DNA from: Corallochytrium limacisporum Hawaii
Lineage: Eukaryota > Protista > Pluriformea
NCBI GenBank assembly: GCA_002811645.1
Contig: PDIP01000050.1
Location: forward strand, 1 to 59,911
Length of the DNA stretch: 59,911 bases
Direction of reading: 5' to 3'
Shown: one piece after another, positions 1,269 to 55,678 of the stretch
How the letters are laid out: every line of letters begins with the position of its first letter
Position numbering within the stretch: position 1 is the stretch's first letter
The notes under the pieces: generated by a model
The model's input: only the letters and a program-made list of their open reading frames with translations
The model's database searches: none
Told to the model about the DNA's origin: nothing
Made by a program: the position numbers and the translations under genes

Positions 1269-3071
1269 ATGACAGTGCTTAATACAAATTCAAAGATGAA
1301 TTTCGGTGCTGCAAATAGTCCTCCGGTTGATGATGATTTTTATCTTCAAATGATCAATGAAGGTCAGAGTGGTAGTCAAGCACCGCCAGGAACGGACTTT
1401 GCCATGGACGTTGCTTCGTTCTTGAACGATGTTCTACTCCCGGCAGATATCCCTGACAATGCTTTGTATCCGAACTCCCAGTTCCACCAGAATACTGAGG
1501 GTGGTGTACATTTTGGCAGTGGAAGTGAGGGTGGCTTCGATTTTAACTCTCCGTCATTCCAACAATCTGAGTTTTCTCCGGGAAGCATGCCACAACCTGA
1601 TCAGCGACCATTTTTCCAGGACCAGCGACACTTCAATCAAATGAAACCTGAAATGATGGGGCATCCTGGGATGCACACGGGTGCTCAACAGGACGAAATT
1701 TCTGCCGAGGACAGGAAGCGTCTTAACCACGTTGCGTCGGAGCAGAAGCGCCGCGACAACATCAAGGATGGATTTAAATGTCTGGCAGACGCCCTTCCTC
1801 ACTTGAAAGAGGGAACGAGTCGCTCTGTTATGTTGAAGAAGGCTGTGGAGTACATTGACCATGTGAAGAAGCAAAACAGGGAAATTGCACAGCTGTTGTA
1901 TCAGCAACAAGGGGCTGGAGCCTCTGTGAAGGGCCCGCAACGGCAAATTGGCATTGGTTCCCCCGGCTCTGACCTAGTCGAAGGTGACGAAGTCTCATAC
2001 GCGGCGTTGATGGAAGCCATTGAAAGACGTTTAAACATTCACAACACGCAAGACCAGCGCAATATTTTCCTCATGTTCAAGGATGAGAAAGTATACGATG
2101 ACATTACGAGTCAGGAGGACTTGTATGAAAAGTTCCGCAAGGTTGCTGCGGAGGGTAAAGAAGAAATGAAGATCGGGGTCTATGTCAGAAAGGAGGGGGC
2201 ACCAAAGGACGCAATGCCAACCTTGGACCACACAGCTGTAGATGCAGAATTGCTGATGGAGAGCCATGTGCCAGAGGCAGAGTCGGAGGTTGAGGACTTC
2301 CCAGATGCTGCATTCAGCGATGTGAATGAAAAGGCATTGGAGATGCTCTTTGCCAAGTTTGAGAATGATCCGCGGAGTATGCTCGGCGGTAAGGCTTACC
2401 AGAACCCACTGTGGCGGAAGGGACGTGTCGCACGCTTCCTGAAGGTTTGCAGAAACGATGTAAAAAAGACCGCGAAGATGATGAATGCTCACTTTGATTG
2501 GCTGCAGGCGTACAACCCAGAGGCTGTGTCTATCCACGACGTGGCCAATGAAGTCAGGGACAACAAAGCATTTTTCCATGGACGAGACCGTGAAGGCCGT
2601 CCGATAATCATCTTCCGGGCCAAGAAGCATTTCGTTAAGAACCGTGACAAATATGAATCCATTCGGATGTGGGTCTACATGGTGCAACAATTCATTGACC
2701 ACTACCAGCGAGATCCAGAACAGAACGTGGTGGTCATCTACGACCGACGGGAAGCCAGCAAGCCCAACAGTGACCCTGCTGTCTTCAAGAAACTCGCCCA
2801 GATTGTGCAGTACAACTATCCGAACATCATGCATCGCATGTACGTGATCGAACCAGACTACGTTTTCCAGTACTCATTCAGTATCGTTAAACTACTGACG
2901 GCAAAAACCTTCCACAAGCGGGTGCTCCTACTCGGAAAGAACTGGATGGAGACACTAAAGAAGTTCATCGACCCCACCAACTTGCCTAAGGACATGGGTG
3001 GTCTGTCAGAGTATGAGTATCGCTATGACCCGGACGACGAGAGCCACACTTTAGGCATTGTGGATGGATAG
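1269..3071 (+). CDS. bHLH transcription factor (Ino4/Mlx/Max-like) fused to a PB1-like domain and a C-terminal CRAL-TRIO (Sec14) lipid-binding domain, 600 aa
   Basis: Single uninterrupted ORF. bHLH RKRLNHVASEQKRRDNIKDGFKCLADALP...SRSVMLKKAVEYID (~1713-1870). PB1-like SYAALMEAIERRL...IFLMFKDEKVYDDITSQEDL...MKIGVYV (~1990-2190). CRAL-TRIO_N VARFLKVCRNDVKKTAKMM and CRAL-TRIO FFHGRDREGRPIIIFRAKKH...QYNYPNIMHRMYVIEP...IDPTNLPKDMGG (~2420-3010). The start may be ATG 1269 or 1296. Confidence 0.9.
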   Translation: MTVLNTNSKMNFGAANSPPVDDDFYLQMINEGQSGSQAPPGTDFAMDVASFLNDVLLPADIPDNALYPNSQFHQNTEGGVHFGSGSEGGFDFNSPSFQQSEFSPGSMPQPDQRPFFQDQRHFNQMKPEMMGHPGMHTGAQQDEISAEDRKRLNHVASEQKRRDNIKDGFKCLADALPHLKEGTSRSVMLKKAVEYIDHVKKQNREIAQLLYQQQGAGASVKGPQRQIGIGSPGSDLVEGDEVSYAALMEAIERRLNIHNTQDQRNIFLMFKDEKVYDDITSQEDLYEKFRKVAAEGKEEMKIGVYVRKEGAPKDAMPTLDHTAVDAELLMESHVPEAESEVEDFPDAAFSDVNEKALEMLFAKFENDPRSMLGGKAYQNPLWRKGRVARFLKVCRNDVKKTAKMMNAHFDWLQAYNPEAVSIHDVANEVRDNKAFFHGRDREGRPIIIFRAKKHFVKNRDKYESIRMWVYMVQQFIDHYQRDPEQNVVVIYDRREASKPNSDPAVFKKLAQIVQYNYPNIMHRMYVIEPDYVFQYSFSIVKLLTAKTFHKRVLLLGKNWMETLKKFIDPTNLPKDMGGLSEYEYRYDPDDESHTLGIVDG

Positions 3072-50139: not shown

Positions 50140-52509
50140 AGTCCTTGTTCGAGGTATTCGCTGTGCTACTATGGGTCTTACACTATTGGATCTATGTTTC
50201 CGGGCGCTCCTGCGCTCTCACACGTTGGCCCTTTCACAAAATTCTTGCCTTCGATTAGCGTACCATAGTAAGGGAATACTCCGCATGTTCAATTGTCGTT
50301 GTCACTATGGAACATAAGGAATGGCTTGTGACTACTGAATTTGCTCTGCCTTGAATGCAGAAGTACCAAAAGGACGTACACTAAGAACACCAGAGCATCC
50401 GAGGTAAAGGTAAGGTACTGCCAAAAGCTCGCAGCCAATGGGACGGTGAAAATAGACTCCCGAATTTTGGGTCAGTTGTCCCCTCGGGACTACTCTTCTG
50501 CCGGATGGAGCAACGAACACAATAGCGGATCCGTGGGCTCGCTACGCGGCGCAACCAAGACCTGACGAAGGAGGCAACACAGCAGTCGACTGATGATGTC
50601 GTGGCTCATCTGGGTCAGAATGATGGCTGTCTGATACAGTTGACGTTGTTGTGATGTCATTCTGTTTGGGATATCGGCGATGGATTTGTACTTTGGAGCC
50701 ATCCTCAAGAGCTCGAGGGTCTTCATCCCGAGCAGACCGTGAATGCTTCAGCATGCCACAGGGGTAAACGCAGGGACTGATCAAATGAAGAGTGATATAA
50801 TCTCCCTGACGATAAATGTTTTGTGTTGCTTCACCACGTTTGGAGACGTTGATCAGCAATTGCTTCTATATCCGGTCTCAGCTTTTGGACCCTCGTTCTA
50901 TTTGCACGCTCGTCAGAACCAACTTCGTCCCGGATGCCGTATCATACATGGACTATGTACATGTAGTCCTCGTGGACTGTGTATGCGCATATCCATTGTG
51001 TTCATACGATCCTGATGCTCATGTCAAGTGCCGAGGCAGCGCGGACCGACAGTTTGAGTCGGATGTTGGGAAACGGATATGCCTCTTGTCCGTACGTATC
51101 GCTTCCCCCGCCCTCCTCCCCTGGTGCCTTTATCCGTACTCCAGCCACAGTGTAAAAGACATTGCGGCGCTTCATTTTTTTTTTCAAACAGTGCCGCCCA
51201 AACTGCACTGAGGTCCCCCTCCCCCCTTTCTCCTTTGTCCGTTTCAGTTCCCCGGAGTTGGCAAGTCTGGCCTGGTACTAATTCTTCCTTCCCAAGAACG
51301 CGTGTTTTCGTTTTTTCTTCCGCTTTCTGCGGGTTTGGTGCCGCGGGTGGGCCATGTATGTATGGCCCCACAATTGAGCAAACGCAATGGCAACGAGCGT
51401 AGATCTCTACTATAGAATGTGTACCGGACAAAGGTCCGTCCCAGTCCCCTCTACCCGGCCCCGTGCCTTCGAATACAATTTCTCGCAATCGGCGGGGTAA
51501 CCCGTTTAAAGCTCCATTTAAATAGGCCCCCTTATACATTCTACTTCTTTCTTTGGTACAAGGTGAGCCAAAAGAAAAAAAAACATGGGCCCTTGCTTCT
51601 TGTCCACGAGCCAAGCATATGCATTTTTTTTTTCTTCGTTCCCGTCCGTCCCCTTCGGAACAAAACACCCCCCCCCCCCCACCAGGAAGAGATTTCTGAA
51701 CGTAACTCCGGAGGGGGTGGAGAGTAGCTTGGAACGCCCGTCATCACCTGCGGAGGGATGTGTCTTAGCTTGTGCTGTAGTTCCTCGTTTCGTTCTGCTT
51801 CGCATCGTGTAACCTCAGTCTTCAAGAGGGTAAATGAACACTTGCGCCTGCAAGATTCGATGAAAACTTGGCCTGTGGTTGTTGCGCAGGCTGGGCACGG
51901 CACCCAAAGATTGTCTCGAGCAAGCCCGCCACCACCGGTTAACATTTTTCGGCGTTACGCGCGTCCTAATATTATACCGATTCTTTATAACATCAAAAAA
52001 TAGAATATAAAAATTCAAATAAAAATATACGGATATTGTTTAAATATAGTCCACTCCGGGCTGAGGAAACAAGGAGTGTGCAAACCTTGGCCCCCCCCCT
52101 CCCTCCACCCTCACGTCCCTTCTCCCCCCCCTCCCCCGGGGGTTCGACCCCTGGCTCTTGCGCCGGCCTGTGAGTGACTGTGGTGTTCTGGGGTTTCCCT
52201 CTTCTGTGCCCGTCAGCAGTGCAGTGCAAGCCAAGGAAACCATCGCCGCCCATATTCCCTTAAGATAGCACACTTGGTGAAACGGAACCCAACAGTCGCT
52301 TTACCTCAGTAGACTCAAATGAGCGAAAACAACTAACGGGGTGGCGCAAAACCGGGGGAAGGGTAGTCATCAACAATAAGGCAATTGGAAAACTATAAAA
52401 AACGAGGGCGTGACTAAAGGTTCTCCTCGTAAGCTGCTTTCACCTGCTGCTGGCGGTGGTTTTTTTTTCTTTTGTTCTCCTTCTGTTTGAGAGTGAACAA
52501 CGGACGAGC

Positions 52510-52512
<3 letters not shown>

Positions 52513-52562
<50 letters not shown>

Positions 52563-52704
52563 GANNNNNNNNNNNNNNNNNNNNNNNNNNNNNNNNNNNN
52601 NNNNNNNNNNNNNNNNNNNNNNNNNNNNNNNNNNNNNNNNNNNNNNNNNNNNNNNNNNNNNNNNNNNNNNNNNNNNNNNNNNNNNNNNNNNNNNNNNNNN
52701 NNNN

Positions 52705-52752
<48 letters not shown>
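52513..52752 (+). repeat. (GA)n microsatellite interrupted by an assembly gap (140 N, 52565-52704)
   Basis: GA repeats on both sides of the N-run; the true length is unknown. Confidence 0.95.
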
Positions 52753-52756
<4 letters not shown>

Positions 52757-54002
52757 CGCCAACCGGGCGGGAGGTCTCGTGTTTTGGTACAGGTTCTTGC
52801 CGCGTCATGAATTCTTACACCATCAGCCCAGCGAGCAAGACGGGAGGGTCCTTGGGCCCGGGAGACCGGAAATGGCGTCAAAGGCGGGAATTGTCCCCCG
52901 TTGCTGTCTCTTGTGTGTACTCTTCGTCCCTGCTGCGCGCTCCGACACATTCTTGCCTTTGGATAGAATACCTCCTGCGAATGAACTGCCTGCGGACGGA
53001 CAAAATATTTTCGGATCGATCATTTTTCTTCCAATGTTCACGAACGGACAAACACAGGGAGAAAGCAAGAAATGTGAATGTTAGAACAAATCGAATACGT
53101 CAGGCATAGGGAGACGCGGGTGTGAAACTCCCCTTTTCCTGCTCCCCCCGGGAGGGAAGGGGGAGTGGGCGGAGCTGGGCAGTCACTCAGGACGCAGGGA
53201 GAGGAAAGAAAGAAAAGCACAAAAAAACTTAAGAACGAGCGCAGTTTGTGTACCGGACGAGAGAAGGACCTAAAAGTGACACCCTTGCAAAAACCTTGAT
53301 TGCAGGCGATGCTGTTGGGTGTATTCTGGTGTATTTCTCCGTCCGGCCCTGTATTATTTTTTGGTCGGGCCTTGCCGTAGTACGCGCTCCCCACCCCACT
53401 CTGAACACCCCCACCTAACCCCAGAGGGGGGGGTTGTGTTCTGTTTGGTATTTGATTTTTTTTTTTGGGTTCTAGTACTCTAGTACTCCCGCGAGAGATG
53501 GAGGCGTGGTTGGGTGGACCAGCCCGGTATTTCTCATTCTCTCAGTGTTTTTTTTTGTCTCCAGCAAAGGACAGACTCGGGGGCCGCCGTAGCATGCGTA
53601 CTACCGTTTCCTCTTCGTTCATTTTCCCTTGTCCTTTTTGTTTCTCCTCTCTCCTCCCCCCCCCAACCCCCACCCCCCGTTATAGTTTTTTCATTCCCTC
53701 TTTTCTGTTTGCTTCTCTGTTTCCCTCACCAAGCTGCCGCTACTGGGGTCCGGTCTCGATGGTTATCGTCGTATCCCCCGTTGGCATTGGGTTGGTGTTC
53801 TGGGCTGCAAGAAAATATGTATTCCCTTCATGTCTGAAGATAACGGAACTGTGTTCGGGTGCTGTTGTGTTCGCGTACTGTTCTTTTTGGACAAGTTCCC
53901 AAGTTTGTCCCTGCAAGCTGAATACGGTTTACTGGGGAGCGTGGTGGATCTTTGAGGACCGTTGGATAATGTGATACTTAAGGGTCCTTGAGCAATCATT
54001 AG

Positions 54003-54210
54003 GTAAGAATGGGTAGGAGACCCGTTAACTTAAACCGTTTTCATCGTACCCGTGCATACCTAAGGAAACTGTCGTGGAATGACCAAAGCGGCGGTGGCAC
54101 GGATCCATTTTGAGAAAAAAAGAGTAACGAATACCCCGGGAACGGGAGAACAAGCATCAGAGTCGCAAAGAAGCAATCATTTAAGGCTATCACTCTGACT
54201 CATTTTGTAG
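54003..54210 (+). other. Probable 5'-UTR intron (208 nt) of the bHLH-PAS gene
   Basis: AG|GTAAGA donor at 54003; CTCTGAC branch-like element followed by TCATTTTGTAG| acceptor ending at 54210, 43 nt before the ATG. Confidence 0.6.
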
Positions 54211-54253
54211 GACCAGACCACCAACACACACCGACAAAATCACCTGAGCAACC

Positions 54254-55678
54254 ATGGATGACCGCATTTACATTGTACTGTACCCAAACAGCAACATCGA
54301 GCCACAGAGTGGCAAACCCTTCGTTGTGTCTCCTTCCGCGAACTGGGCAGAGACCAAATCCGCTTGCTACAACCGCCTCTATGGGGTTCCGAACGCAGGA
54401 GCGGCCCTTTTTGACGTCATGGGGAAACCTGTCCTCACTGCCTACGACCTTGTACAAGGCCAGCCGATTGTAGTCACAGACGGGCAGAGCGCCGGAGCTA
54501 ATGTCCAGGAGGACTTTGACAGCGAGCTCATGAACGTGCTGGGCGGCCAATCGTTCCAGAGTGAGGTCACAAACTCTGTCGGCAACGTTGGTGATCTACT
54601 GCAAGAGGGTCTTGGTGGTGTCTACGGTAAGGTTGATCCAGAGGGCACCCACAACTTGGCCCATCTTCAAGTCTGGCTCGGTGATGTGGACAACCAGATC
54701 GGAGACGTGGGCAATGGCTTTGACAATGGCAACGGTGCCGCTGCAGCAGCTGCACTGGCCGACGCCAACAACCCGGCCAAGCGTAGGGCTCTGGGTAAGC
54801 CGGACATTCCCTCAATTGACCTCAACGGTGTAATTCAGCAGGCTAAGGGCTTTGGAAACACTGCCAGCAGCCAGAACAGTGCTCGCAGCGACACGGGTGC
54901 TGCCCCGGGACAGAAACCAAAGCGCAAGACCGTGCGCCTGAGCTCACACAAGCAAGCTGAACAGCGCAGCCGCGACAAGCTTCGCAACAGCATGAAGACA
55001 CTCATGCTCGAAATTCCGAGTCTGGGCAAAGAGGAAAAGATGCCCAGCAAGGCTGCTATCCTGGAGATGGCTGCAGAGTACATTCGCAAGAAGAACATTG
55101 AGACCCGGGAGCTTGTTGAACAGCTGCGGAAGACCGCCGCCGAAGCCGAAGAAAAGAAGAATCGCGTGAACGCGATCAACCAAGACCTGAAGGCCAGCTC
55201 TTTCACCACCCTGGAGATTACTGATCAGAACGGCATGTATACCTACGTGAACGAGAACTGGTGCCGAATCTTTGGCTTCGTGCGGGAGGAGGTCATTGGC
55301 AAGCTCTACCGTGAGAACACGGACTGCAGCAGTTGCAAGATCATGGACGCTAAGCAACAGCAGATTGATGCGCAACTGAAACGTGGCGAGGACTGGCGTG
55401 GCATGGTGCTTAGCCGAAGCAAGGACGGTGTGGCGCTTAGTTCTTTCTGCGTGATAAACCCCGTGCTCGGACCAAACGGCGAGGTATTCCAGTACGTTTG
55501 CGTTCGAAGCCGCTTCCAGGCGATCGATGAGGACGACGTCACCGAGAAGTGTTCCGTCAAGTACGGCTTGAGCGAAGACGATGCCGTGGACAACTCTGCA
55601 TTGCTGGCCTACATGATCAAGGCGAACATTCGCCGCCAGAGCCAGTCAACTGCAGCGGTCGACGGAACGGCAGCTTAA
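54254..55678 (+). CDS. bHLH-ZIP transcription factor with an N-terminal DCX/KHA-like beta-grasp domain and a single C-terminal PAS/PAC domain, 474 aa
   Basis: N-terminus IYIVLYPNSN...GKPFVV...LFDVMGKPVLTAYDLVQGQPIVVTDGQ. bHLH SHKQAEQRSRDKLRNSMKTLMLEIP...PSKAAILEMAAEYIR plus coiled coil (~54930-55190). PAS LEITDQNGMYTYVNENWCRIFGFVREEVIGK...GEDWRG..RSKDG...INPVLGPNGEVFQYVCVR (~55200-55515). Confidence 0.9.
   Translation: MDDRIYIVLYPNSNIEPQSGKPFVVSPSANWAETKSACYNRLYGVPNAGAALFDVMGKPVLTAYDLVQGQPIVVTDGQSAGANVQEDFDSELMNVLGGQSFQSEVTNSVGNVGDLLQEGLGGVYGKVDPEGTHNLAHLQVWLGDVDNQIGDVGNGFDNGNGAAAAAALADANNPAKRRALGKPDIPSIDLNGVIQQAKGFGNTASSQNSARSDTGAAPGQKPKRKTVRLSSHKQAEQRSRDKLRNSMKTLMLEIPSLGKEEKMPSKAAILEMAAEYIRKKNIETRELVEQLRKTAAEAEEKKNRVNAINQDLKASSFTTLEITDQNGMYTYVNENWCRIFGFVREEVIGKLYRENTDCSSCKIMDAKQQQIDAQLKRGEDWRGMVLSRSKDGVALSSFCVINPVLGPNGEVFQYVCVRSRFQAIDEDDVTEKCSVKYGLSEDDAVDNSALLAYMIKANIRRQSQSTAAVDGTAA

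Follow-up and report, generated by a model that had tools for sequence, protein, structure and literature searches.

A conserved CxxC motif in the PAS domain of a holozoan bHLH-PAS family suggests a possible thiol-based sensor in Corallochytrium limacisporum

Introduction

The question raised by the locus described here is what a single PAS domain may sense when it is joined to a Max-like basic helix-loop-helix (bHLH) domain in one of the unicellular relatives of animals, and how such a fusion arose. The gene in question lies at positions 54254-55678 on the forward strand of contig PDIP01000050.1 from Corallochytrium limacisporum, and the whole of this 59,911-nucleotide stretch of DNA is referred to below as the window. 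Animals rely on bHLH-PAS factors for their responses to oxygen and xenobiotics and for their clocks, and the origin of these factors is unsettled. Non-animal bHLH-PAS proteins with a single PAS domain have already been published, for example from diatoms (RITMO1) and from Capsaspora.

An initial annotation of the window described the product as a Max/Pho4-type bHLH followed by one PAS domain of the PDE8/bacterial-sensor pattern, and proposed a convergent fusion that acts as a direct, cofactor-based sensor through a CxxC motif. To address these proposals, we utilize a combination of profile searches, family alignment and structure prediction to provide a detailed description of this protein and its relatives. 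We describe a family of bHLH-PAS proteins from unicellular holozoans, we document the loss of flavin-binding residues and the conservation of a cysteine pair in its PAS domain, and we weigh a thiol-based sensor against other explanations of the same features.

The gene is a diverged member of an unnamed holozoan family

The coding sequence (54254..55678, forward strand, as are all features of the gene given below) is one whole, intronless open reading frame (ORF) of 474 codons plus a stop codon. An in-frame TGA is located two codons upstream of the start, the start context has A at -3 and G at +4, and the gene model is based on this ORF together with a EukProt record that holds an identical 474-residue protein. 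An exhaustive representative search identified at least 12 proteins that align with the product through both the bHLH and the PAS domain in one stretch, at 30-41% identity and covering query positions from about 1-14 to 202-222. These 12 matches and the product itself constitute a core family of 13 proteins from at least eight genera, within which the product exhibits about 22-30% identity over full length to the other members. The family includes SARC_01821 and SARC_00488 of Sphaeroforma arctica, CFRG2580T1 of Creolimax fragrantissima, CAOG_08129 of Capsaspora owczarzaki, two proteins of Chromosphaera perkinsii (among them Nk52_evm29s2309), and proteins of Syssomonas multiformis, Ichthyophonus hoferi and Amoebidium parasiticum, as well as one metagenome contig, one Logan contig and a paralog from the Corallochytrium genome itself (P0099). 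The named sources are thus unicellular holozoans throughout, comprising Corallochytrium, Syssomonas, five ichthyosporean genera and Capsaspora. Since the best 150 matches of the representative search were mostly bacterial multi-PAS proteins, below which weaker choanoflagellate, animal or algal kin could rank, we make no claim that the family is absent from these groups. Word-index protein searches returned the query, one family member and otherwise bacterial PAS proteins only; low-complexity words were dominant in these searches, which consequently have no bearing on the range of the family.

The order of parts in the alignment is an N-terminal domain of approximately 80 residues, a long low-complexity linker, a bHLH with a zipper-like helix, one PAS domain and a short tail. 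Only 11 columns are invariant among the 13 proteins, and these include H232, E236 and R240 of the bHLH and C358, W381, G383 and R418 of the PAS domain. The gene is almost certainly an intact member of this unnamed family, whose build can be written as doublecortin (DCX)-like domain, linker, bHLH-zipper and single PAS. It is also a diverged member. While it shares with the others the domain order, the invariant His, Glu and Arg, the CxxC column and W381, G383 and R418, it differs in having NSN in place of an NDG motif in the DCX-like domain, Lys for the usual Pro after the CxxC, and the cysteine of PAS strand H-beta at residue 399 and not at 397. Our literature search found nothing on ichthyosporean or Corallochytrium bHLH-PAS proteins, on CAOG_08129 or on a doublecortin plus bHLH plus PAS architecture, nor did it find a published function for any family member.

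The C. limacisporum genome (24.1 Mb, 286 contigs) was found to contain eight members of this family. In addition to the gene described here these are L002 on contig C267, L003 on C185, L004 and L005 on C238, L008 on C111, and two more on C45 and C212. The closest of these paralogs is L002, which matches the product at 4e-25 and is an exact match to EukProt Clim_evm49s235. A tree of 17 family sequences, constructed from the bHLH and PAS regions, leaves 9 of 14 inner branches open and places the gene on a long branch (1.55 versus a median of 0.7), and for both reasons no orthology is assigned.

A PAS domain of the flavin-sensor clade has lost the flavin triad

The PAS domain extends from A-beta to I-beta over residues 319-424 (55208..55525). 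It is recognized by Pfam PAS_9 at residues 322-417 with 34.3 bits (cut-off 27) and by Pfam PAS (PF00989) with 26.8 bits (cut-off 22.6), and this is the only PAS stretch in the protein, with approximately 50 residues located beyond the PAS core. Comparison of the family PAS profile with the Protein Data Bank (PDB) gave MmoS (2.5e-17) and NifL (1.4e-13) as the best matches, followed by many LOV domains, and the PAS domains of ARNT, HIF, CLOCK or any other animal bHLH-PAS protein are not present among the best 60 profile matches (E up to 9.3e-6). An AlphaFold2 (AF2) model of residues 300-474, computed with the family and 30 bacterial neighbors as input, has a mean predicted local distance difference test (pLDDT) value of 85.5 with the core above 90. 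Its top Foldseek matches are Aer, NifL, MmoS and LOV domains, again with no animal bHLH-PAS domain among the 50 best. Additionally, the ESM Atlas neighbors by shape are bacterial PAS sensors, and the NCBIfam matches are DibA, NifL and a sensory-box domain. By sequence and by predicted fold, the PAS domain thus belongs with the flavin sensors MmoS, NifL, Aer and LOV. The single PAS domain of PDE8/bacterial-sensor pattern that had been noted initially is well described by this placement, as Xing et al. 2023 have grouped the flavin PAS clusters into one clade that includes PDE8-PAS (PMC10468136).

The family shares with MmoS (3ewk), NifL (2gj3), Aer (8dik) and LOV domains a PAS core with W-x-G and K-D-G motifs and the Arg of I-beta. 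However, three differences separate it from these sensors. Its output domain is a eukaryotic bHLH while theirs are kinases, chemoreceptors or control of NifA, its E-alpha/F-alpha junction is three residues longer and bears the CxxC, and it does not contain the flavin triad. Three conserved cofactor residues have been defined for the flavin PAS domains, namely Trp/His/Asn for flavin adenine dinucleotide (FAD) and Arg/Cys/Asn for flavin mononucleotide (FMN), with at least two of the three serving as a criterion for flavin binding (Xing et al. 2023; PMC10468136). Most of the 30 closest bacterial PAS domains retain the triad of His in E-alpha, Trp or Tyr in F-alpha and Asn in G-beta, while none of the 13 core family members has any of these residues; the product has Tyr352, Asp372 and Ser387 at these positions, and the position of the LOV adduct-forming Cys is also not a Cys. 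Because all three triad positions are replaced in every core member, flavin binding appears unlikely.

The CxxC motif is a hallmark of the family

The product contains seven cysteines, at residues 38, 337, 358, 361, 399, 416 and 433, and six of the seven fall within residues 319-434, a region that makes up 24% of the protein (binomial P = 0.0012). The initial annotation had noted a CSSC and three more cysteines in the PAS domain. The former is C358-x-x-C361 (55325..55336) and the latter correspond to C337, C399 and C416. Conservation is highest at the CxxC, with the first position being Cys in 13/13 and the second in 12/13 core members, so this pair is neither unconserved nor scattered. In the AF2 model F-alpha starts at residue 362 (model residue 63), which places C358 in the loop before this helix and C361 at its N-cap. 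CxxC motifs, both redox-active and metal-binding ones, are usually found in such a position. In terms of the bacterial relatives, the CxxC takes the place of the Ser and His in an N-S-G-x-H segment. The CxxC is therefore a hallmark of the family, situated at the entry to F-alpha. A c-type heme site (CxxCH) was considered and rejected, there being no His after the CxxC in any member.

The remaining cysteines are more variable. Position 397 in strand H-beta is Cys in 10 of the 13 core members, but in the product it is Ser with a Cys two residues further along at 399 (55448..55450); Ser is likewise present at 397 in Capsaspora and in the metagenome member P0053. An HMMER alignment to the LOV domains of Adagio aligns position 397 with the H-beta Asn of LOV domains. 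This Asn hydrogen-bonds the flavin, so position 397 should face the pocket, and C399 should be on the same face since it lies two residues further along the same strand. Ungapped continuation of the alignment puts R418 on the LOV I-beta Gln and C416 (55499..55501, strand I-beta in AF2), a Cys in 5/13 core members, two residues before this invariant Arg. Antiparallel strand pairing would make C399 and C416 cross-strand neighbors on the pocket face. C433 (55550..55552) is at the end of a short helix after the PAS domain, modeled at residues 426-434 with lower confidence, and has a Cys counterpart in 8/13 core members. All members without the H-beta Cys have the tail Cys and all members without the tail Cys have the H-beta Cys, with the C-terminally truncated Ichthyophonus model left unscored for the tail position. 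Finally, C337 in helix C-alpha (55262..55264) is Glu in the other 12 core members, yet family and bacterial alignments show a Cys at this position in the CxxC-less paralogs L008, L004 and L005 and in many bacterial neighbors.

Three members, P0028, P0042 and P0102 (Chromosphaera, Syssomonas and Amoebidium), exhibit an extra cysteine in F-alpha that forms a CX2CX6C motif. It lies roughly two turns further on the same face of the helix and may be an alternative third ligand position.

The CxxC is not a general feature of the family in C. limacisporum, as it is kept in only two of the eight own-genome members, the gene described here and L002. Two close CxxC-less paralogs, L004 and L005, are present on contig C238 at 44.6 kb on the reverse strand and 58.8 kb on the forward strand, approximately 14 kb apart and in opposite orientation. 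Both have a large insertion in the H-beta/I-beta hairpin of the PAS domain, and they are joined in the tree at 100/100 support.

The bHLH and zipper are of the Max type

The basic region and helix-loop-helix occupy residues 226-278 (54929..55087), with a Pfam HLH match at 230-278 of 28.9 bits (cut-off 20.7). Two motifs on which the initial Max/Pho4 assignment was based, SHKQAEQRSR and PSKAAIL, are located at residues 231-240 and 264-270, and the assignment agrees with both single-sequence and profile comparisons. Matches of the single bHLH sequence are Myc, Max, USF2, Pho4 and Cbf1, with BMAL1 appearing only at E = 0.23. The family bHLH profile compared with solved structures ranks Max first (1e-15), followed by Myc (2.7e-10), USF2 (1.3e-9), Pho4 (3.7e-8) and MITF (2.9e-7), while the class C factors BMAL1, CLOCK and ARNT are found at 3.7e-5, 4.2e-4 and 2e-3, respectively. 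Expressed in bits, Max scores 60.8 versus 20-27 for ARNT, BMAL1 and CLOCK. As is the case for the PAS domain, these nearest-match results are similarity rankings and not a phylogeny.

The three invariant bHLH residues form the basic-region pattern His-x3-Glu-x3-Arg. From the complexes of Max, USF and Pho4 this is the pattern of group-B factors that bind the E-box CACGTG. Judged by these comparisons, the bHLH is of group B, like that of Max, Myc, USF and Pho4. The profile alignment to Max (query 5-85, chain 3-82) additionally continues along helix 2 and covers the zipper of Max, which defines a zipper-like helix that continues from helix 2 to the helix preceding the PAS domain (residues 279-314, 55088..55195). 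Residues 301-314 of this region are helical in the AF2 model. The family thus shares with the Max/Myc/USF/Pho4 factors the basic-region pattern and an aligned zipper, but those factors lack a PAS and a DCX-like domain, and the heptad register of the product (L270-I277-T284-L291-A298-V305-L312) is weak. Prediction of a homodimer from two copies of residues 222-445 plus Zn gave scores of 0.14 and 0.10 relative to a mark of 0.32, a result that speaks neither for nor against dimerization.

Two further C. limacisporum genes, L006 on contig C284 and L007 on C190, code for bHLH-zipper proteins that match Pfam models of the INO2/INO4 type. They have in common a conserved C-terminal region that contains no PAS domain, and they are outside the DCX-like/bHLH/PAS family.

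A possible thiol-based sensor and its alternatives

The best overall explanation of these features is that the protein is an E-box bHLH-zipper factor equipped with a thiol-based PAS sensor, a reading to which we assign about as much weight as to all others combined. In this mechanism a dimer formed via the bHLH-zipper would bind CACGTG-type E-boxes, the PAS pocket would no longer hold a flavin, and the CxxC would function as a thiol-based sensor, either as a C358-C361 dithiol/disulfide switch or by supplying two ligands to an Fe-S cluster, Zn or Cu. Further ligands could be provided by C399 and C416, by C433 or by the CxxC of the partner subunit, and the state of the cysteine site would alter PAS packing or dimerization and consequently transcriptional output. 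For cysteine-based sensing of some kind by the PAS domain the balance stands roughly level, while the presence of Fe-S or another metal specifically at the cysteine site is considerably more doubtful. The same doubt applies to the most specific version, in which the CxxC together with C399, C416 and C433 or a partner CxxC would ligate an Fe-S cluster or a thiolate-bound metal in a formerly flavin-binding PAS domain, making the protein a one-component sensor of oxygen, redox state or sulfide.

Two observations weigh against a thiol-based sensor. The third and fourth cysteine positions vary among family members, and the strict conservation of only the CxxC pair argues against one fixed four-cysteine site. 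Furthermore, since six of the eight C. limacisporum paralogs do not contain a CxxC, the family scaffold evidently works without it. Both observations fit an explanation in which the PAS domain is a dimerization or partner-selection module only, a role that PAS-A mostly has in the bHLH-PAS proteins of animals, with the cysteines having a structural role (for example in a Zn knuckle that caps F-alpha) or being incidental; PAS domains without ligands are common. What speaks against such a purely structural module is that C358 is one of so few columns to remain invariant in proteins this divergent, and that the H-beta Cys of the family stands where the parent clade has a residue in contact with the cofactor, which looks like cofactor replacement and not decay. 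We consider this explanation possible, but clearly less probable than cysteine-based sensing.

It is also conceivable that the PAS domain binds heme, a small organic ligand or a metabolite in its flavin-free pocket. Seven of the 13 members have a Pro after the CxxC, and this Cys-Pro resembles heme-regulatory motifs; additionally, the pocket has other residues than in the flavin clade, and PAS domains have become heme-binding repeatedly in evolution (PMC10468136). However, this argument is motif-based only, the product itself has the Lys mentioned above and not Pro, and known heme-ligand positions have no conserved His, there being none among the invariant PAS columns, so that a heme or metabolite sensor is unlikely. 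Least probable by far is that the PAS domain has remained a flavin sensor (FAD/FMN) for redox state or light, as NifL, MmoS, Aer and LOV are. The closest relatives in sequence and fold all bind flavin, but the contact positions that are kept in the bacterial neighbors are replaced throughout the family and the LOV adduct Cys is missing, and with the triad lost we have rejected this reading.

For the version of a thiol-based sensor in which the cysteines ligate an Fe-S cluster, the histidine kinase NreB offers a comparison. A CX2C in the helical part of the NreB PAS domain and a third Cys ligate an Fe-S cluster, and three-cysteine coordination is documented (PMC13478379). The motif is CX2CX11C with a [2Fe-2S] cluster in Bacillus licheniformis and CX2CX11CX2C with a [4Fe-4S] cluster in Staphylococcus carnosus (PMC13478379). 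The C. limacisporum product likewise has its CX2C in a comparable helical stretch, which lies between B-beta and G-beta of the PAS domain. In contrast, its next cysteine (C399) follows after a spacing of 37 residues, with a corresponding spacing of 35 to the family H-beta Cys and of 6 in the three members with an F-alpha Cys, and its output domain is a bHLH and not a histidine kinase. No NreB-named family is present among the NCBIfam matches at E up to 1, indicating no detectable sequence kinship. Because of this and of the different spacing, NreB describes how the protein may work and not a family to which it belongs.

Origin of the fusion

Separate from the question of mechanism is whether the fusion arose independently of other bHLH-PAS proteins. 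Like the animal class C factors (ARNT, BMAL1, CLOCK, HIF and AhR), the family has its PAS behind a bHLH on the same polypeptide chain and the build of a dimeric transcription factor. However, the animal proteins have tandem PAS-A/PAS-B domains where the family has one PAS, and their bHLH is far more distant from that of the family than are those of Max, Myc and USF. A closer resemblance in layout is seen with diatom RITMO1 (bHLH1a) and the RITMO1-like proteins of algae, which, when compared by description, also exhibit an extended N-terminus, one PAS domain behind the bHLH and a short C-terminal part (PMC6600994). The role of RITMO1 is in circadian regulation in a phototroph, a DCX-like domain and the cysteine motif are unreported for it, and the RITMO1 papers contain no discussion of cofactor, ligand or cysteines. 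About 90 single-PAS bHLH-PAS proteins have been described in algae (PMC6600994).

These likenesses raise an alternative in which the fusion is homologous to an ARNT-like stem of animal class C, to the algal RITMO1-like proteins, or to both. A bHLH-PAS protein of Capsaspora has been counted as kin or outgroup of animal group C (PMC5064789, PMC5800844), Annunziata et al. have argued for a common single-PAS ancestor (PMC6600994), and in the ESM Atlas language-model features place a diatom HLH+PAS cluster nearest with a score of 0.94, which serves as a lead only. Against a shared origin stand the separation in bits between Max and the class C factors, read as the similarity ranking that it is, the absence of animal bHLH-PAS domains from the best PDB matches of the PAS profile, and the single PAS with an N-terminal DCX-like domain and no PAS-B. 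Neither domain ranks with ARNT or class C in the profile and Foldseek rankings, and the CxxC is conserved in the family, so neither of the two outcomes that had been named as refuting the initial proposal was observed. We regard a shared origin as a minority possibility, and a convergent bHLH-PAS fusion as plausible though unproven.

N-terminal domain, linker and other features of the window

The N-terminal domain (residues 4-79, 54263..54490) was modeled by AF2 with the family alignment at pLDDT 80.5 and shows a beta-grasp (ubiquitin-like) fold with a beta-beta-alpha-beta-beta order. Its best Foldseek matches are Toxoplasma DCX domains (E 7.9e-5, template modeling (TM) score 0.63-0.65), followed by the ubiquitin-like domain of tubulin cofactor E (TBCE) and ubiquitin/ISG15. 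Among family members, Pfam Ubiquitin_DCDC1 is matched in 5/12 and DCX in 1, and doublecortins are first in the PDB profile list although at non-significant levels. The model thus suggests a doublecortin-like beta-grasp domain, with sequence support that is weak and points the same way. The N-terminal domain of the product taken alone has no Pfam sequence match, and its doublecortin-type fold is consequently assigned through the family alignment, its own sequence signal being absent. C38 (54365-54367) is located in the helix of this domain, and a Cys at this position is common to 8/17 aligned family members.

The low-complexity and otherwise disordered linker (residues 80-225, 54491..54928) has no Pfam match. 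The family alignment reveals within it, at columns about 385-400, a short motif of approximately F-x-N-[IM]-x-[LF]-P-x-[ILM]-[DN] that is common to most family members, CxxC-less paralogs included, and that may serve in activation, docking or transport. Only a degenerate remnant is present in the product (PDIPSIDL, 54800-54823).

Upstream of the gene is an ORF-poor stretch of 4.1 kb (50140-54253) that encloses a run of N (an assembly gap) at about 52560-52700, with long (GA)n/(CT)n repeats on either side. Because of this gap, part of the apparently gene-free block is unsequenced DNA, and the 4.1 kb given here are an apparent length. A second unusual bHLH of the window is encoded by an ORF at 1269-3071 (forward strand, 600 residues). 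Its HLH covers residues 150-199 (35.2 bits), and a CRAL/TRIO domain of the lipid-binding Sec14 type is recognized in the C-terminal part at 431-578 (E 5.1e-29), so that here a bHLH is joined to a domain that binds lipids or small molecules.

Implications

In the unicellular organisms most closely related to animals, a bHLH-PAS protein is found that is built differently from those of animals, with a Max-like bHLH, a PAS domain of the flavin clade and a doublecortin-like head, and with a sensor pocket in which flavin-binding residues have been exchanged for conserved cysteines. The C. limacisporum genome offers a built-in comparison in its two paralogs with and six paralogs without the CxxC, and Corallochytrium is described in a preprint as stably transfectable (bioRxiv 10.1101/2020.11.12.379420). 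Mills et al. 2018 have concluded that the HIF pathway is not ancestral to animals (PMC5800844). If the cysteine site does function as a metal or Fe-S center or as a redox switch, then the family would provide a direct, one-protein route from oxygen or redox state to transcription in a pre-animal lineage, as well as a natural case of cofactor replacement within the PAS scaffold. Should the Fe-S or metal version specifically be true, the family would represent the equivalent of NreB in a eukaryote, and it would offer an alternative to the HIF pathway.

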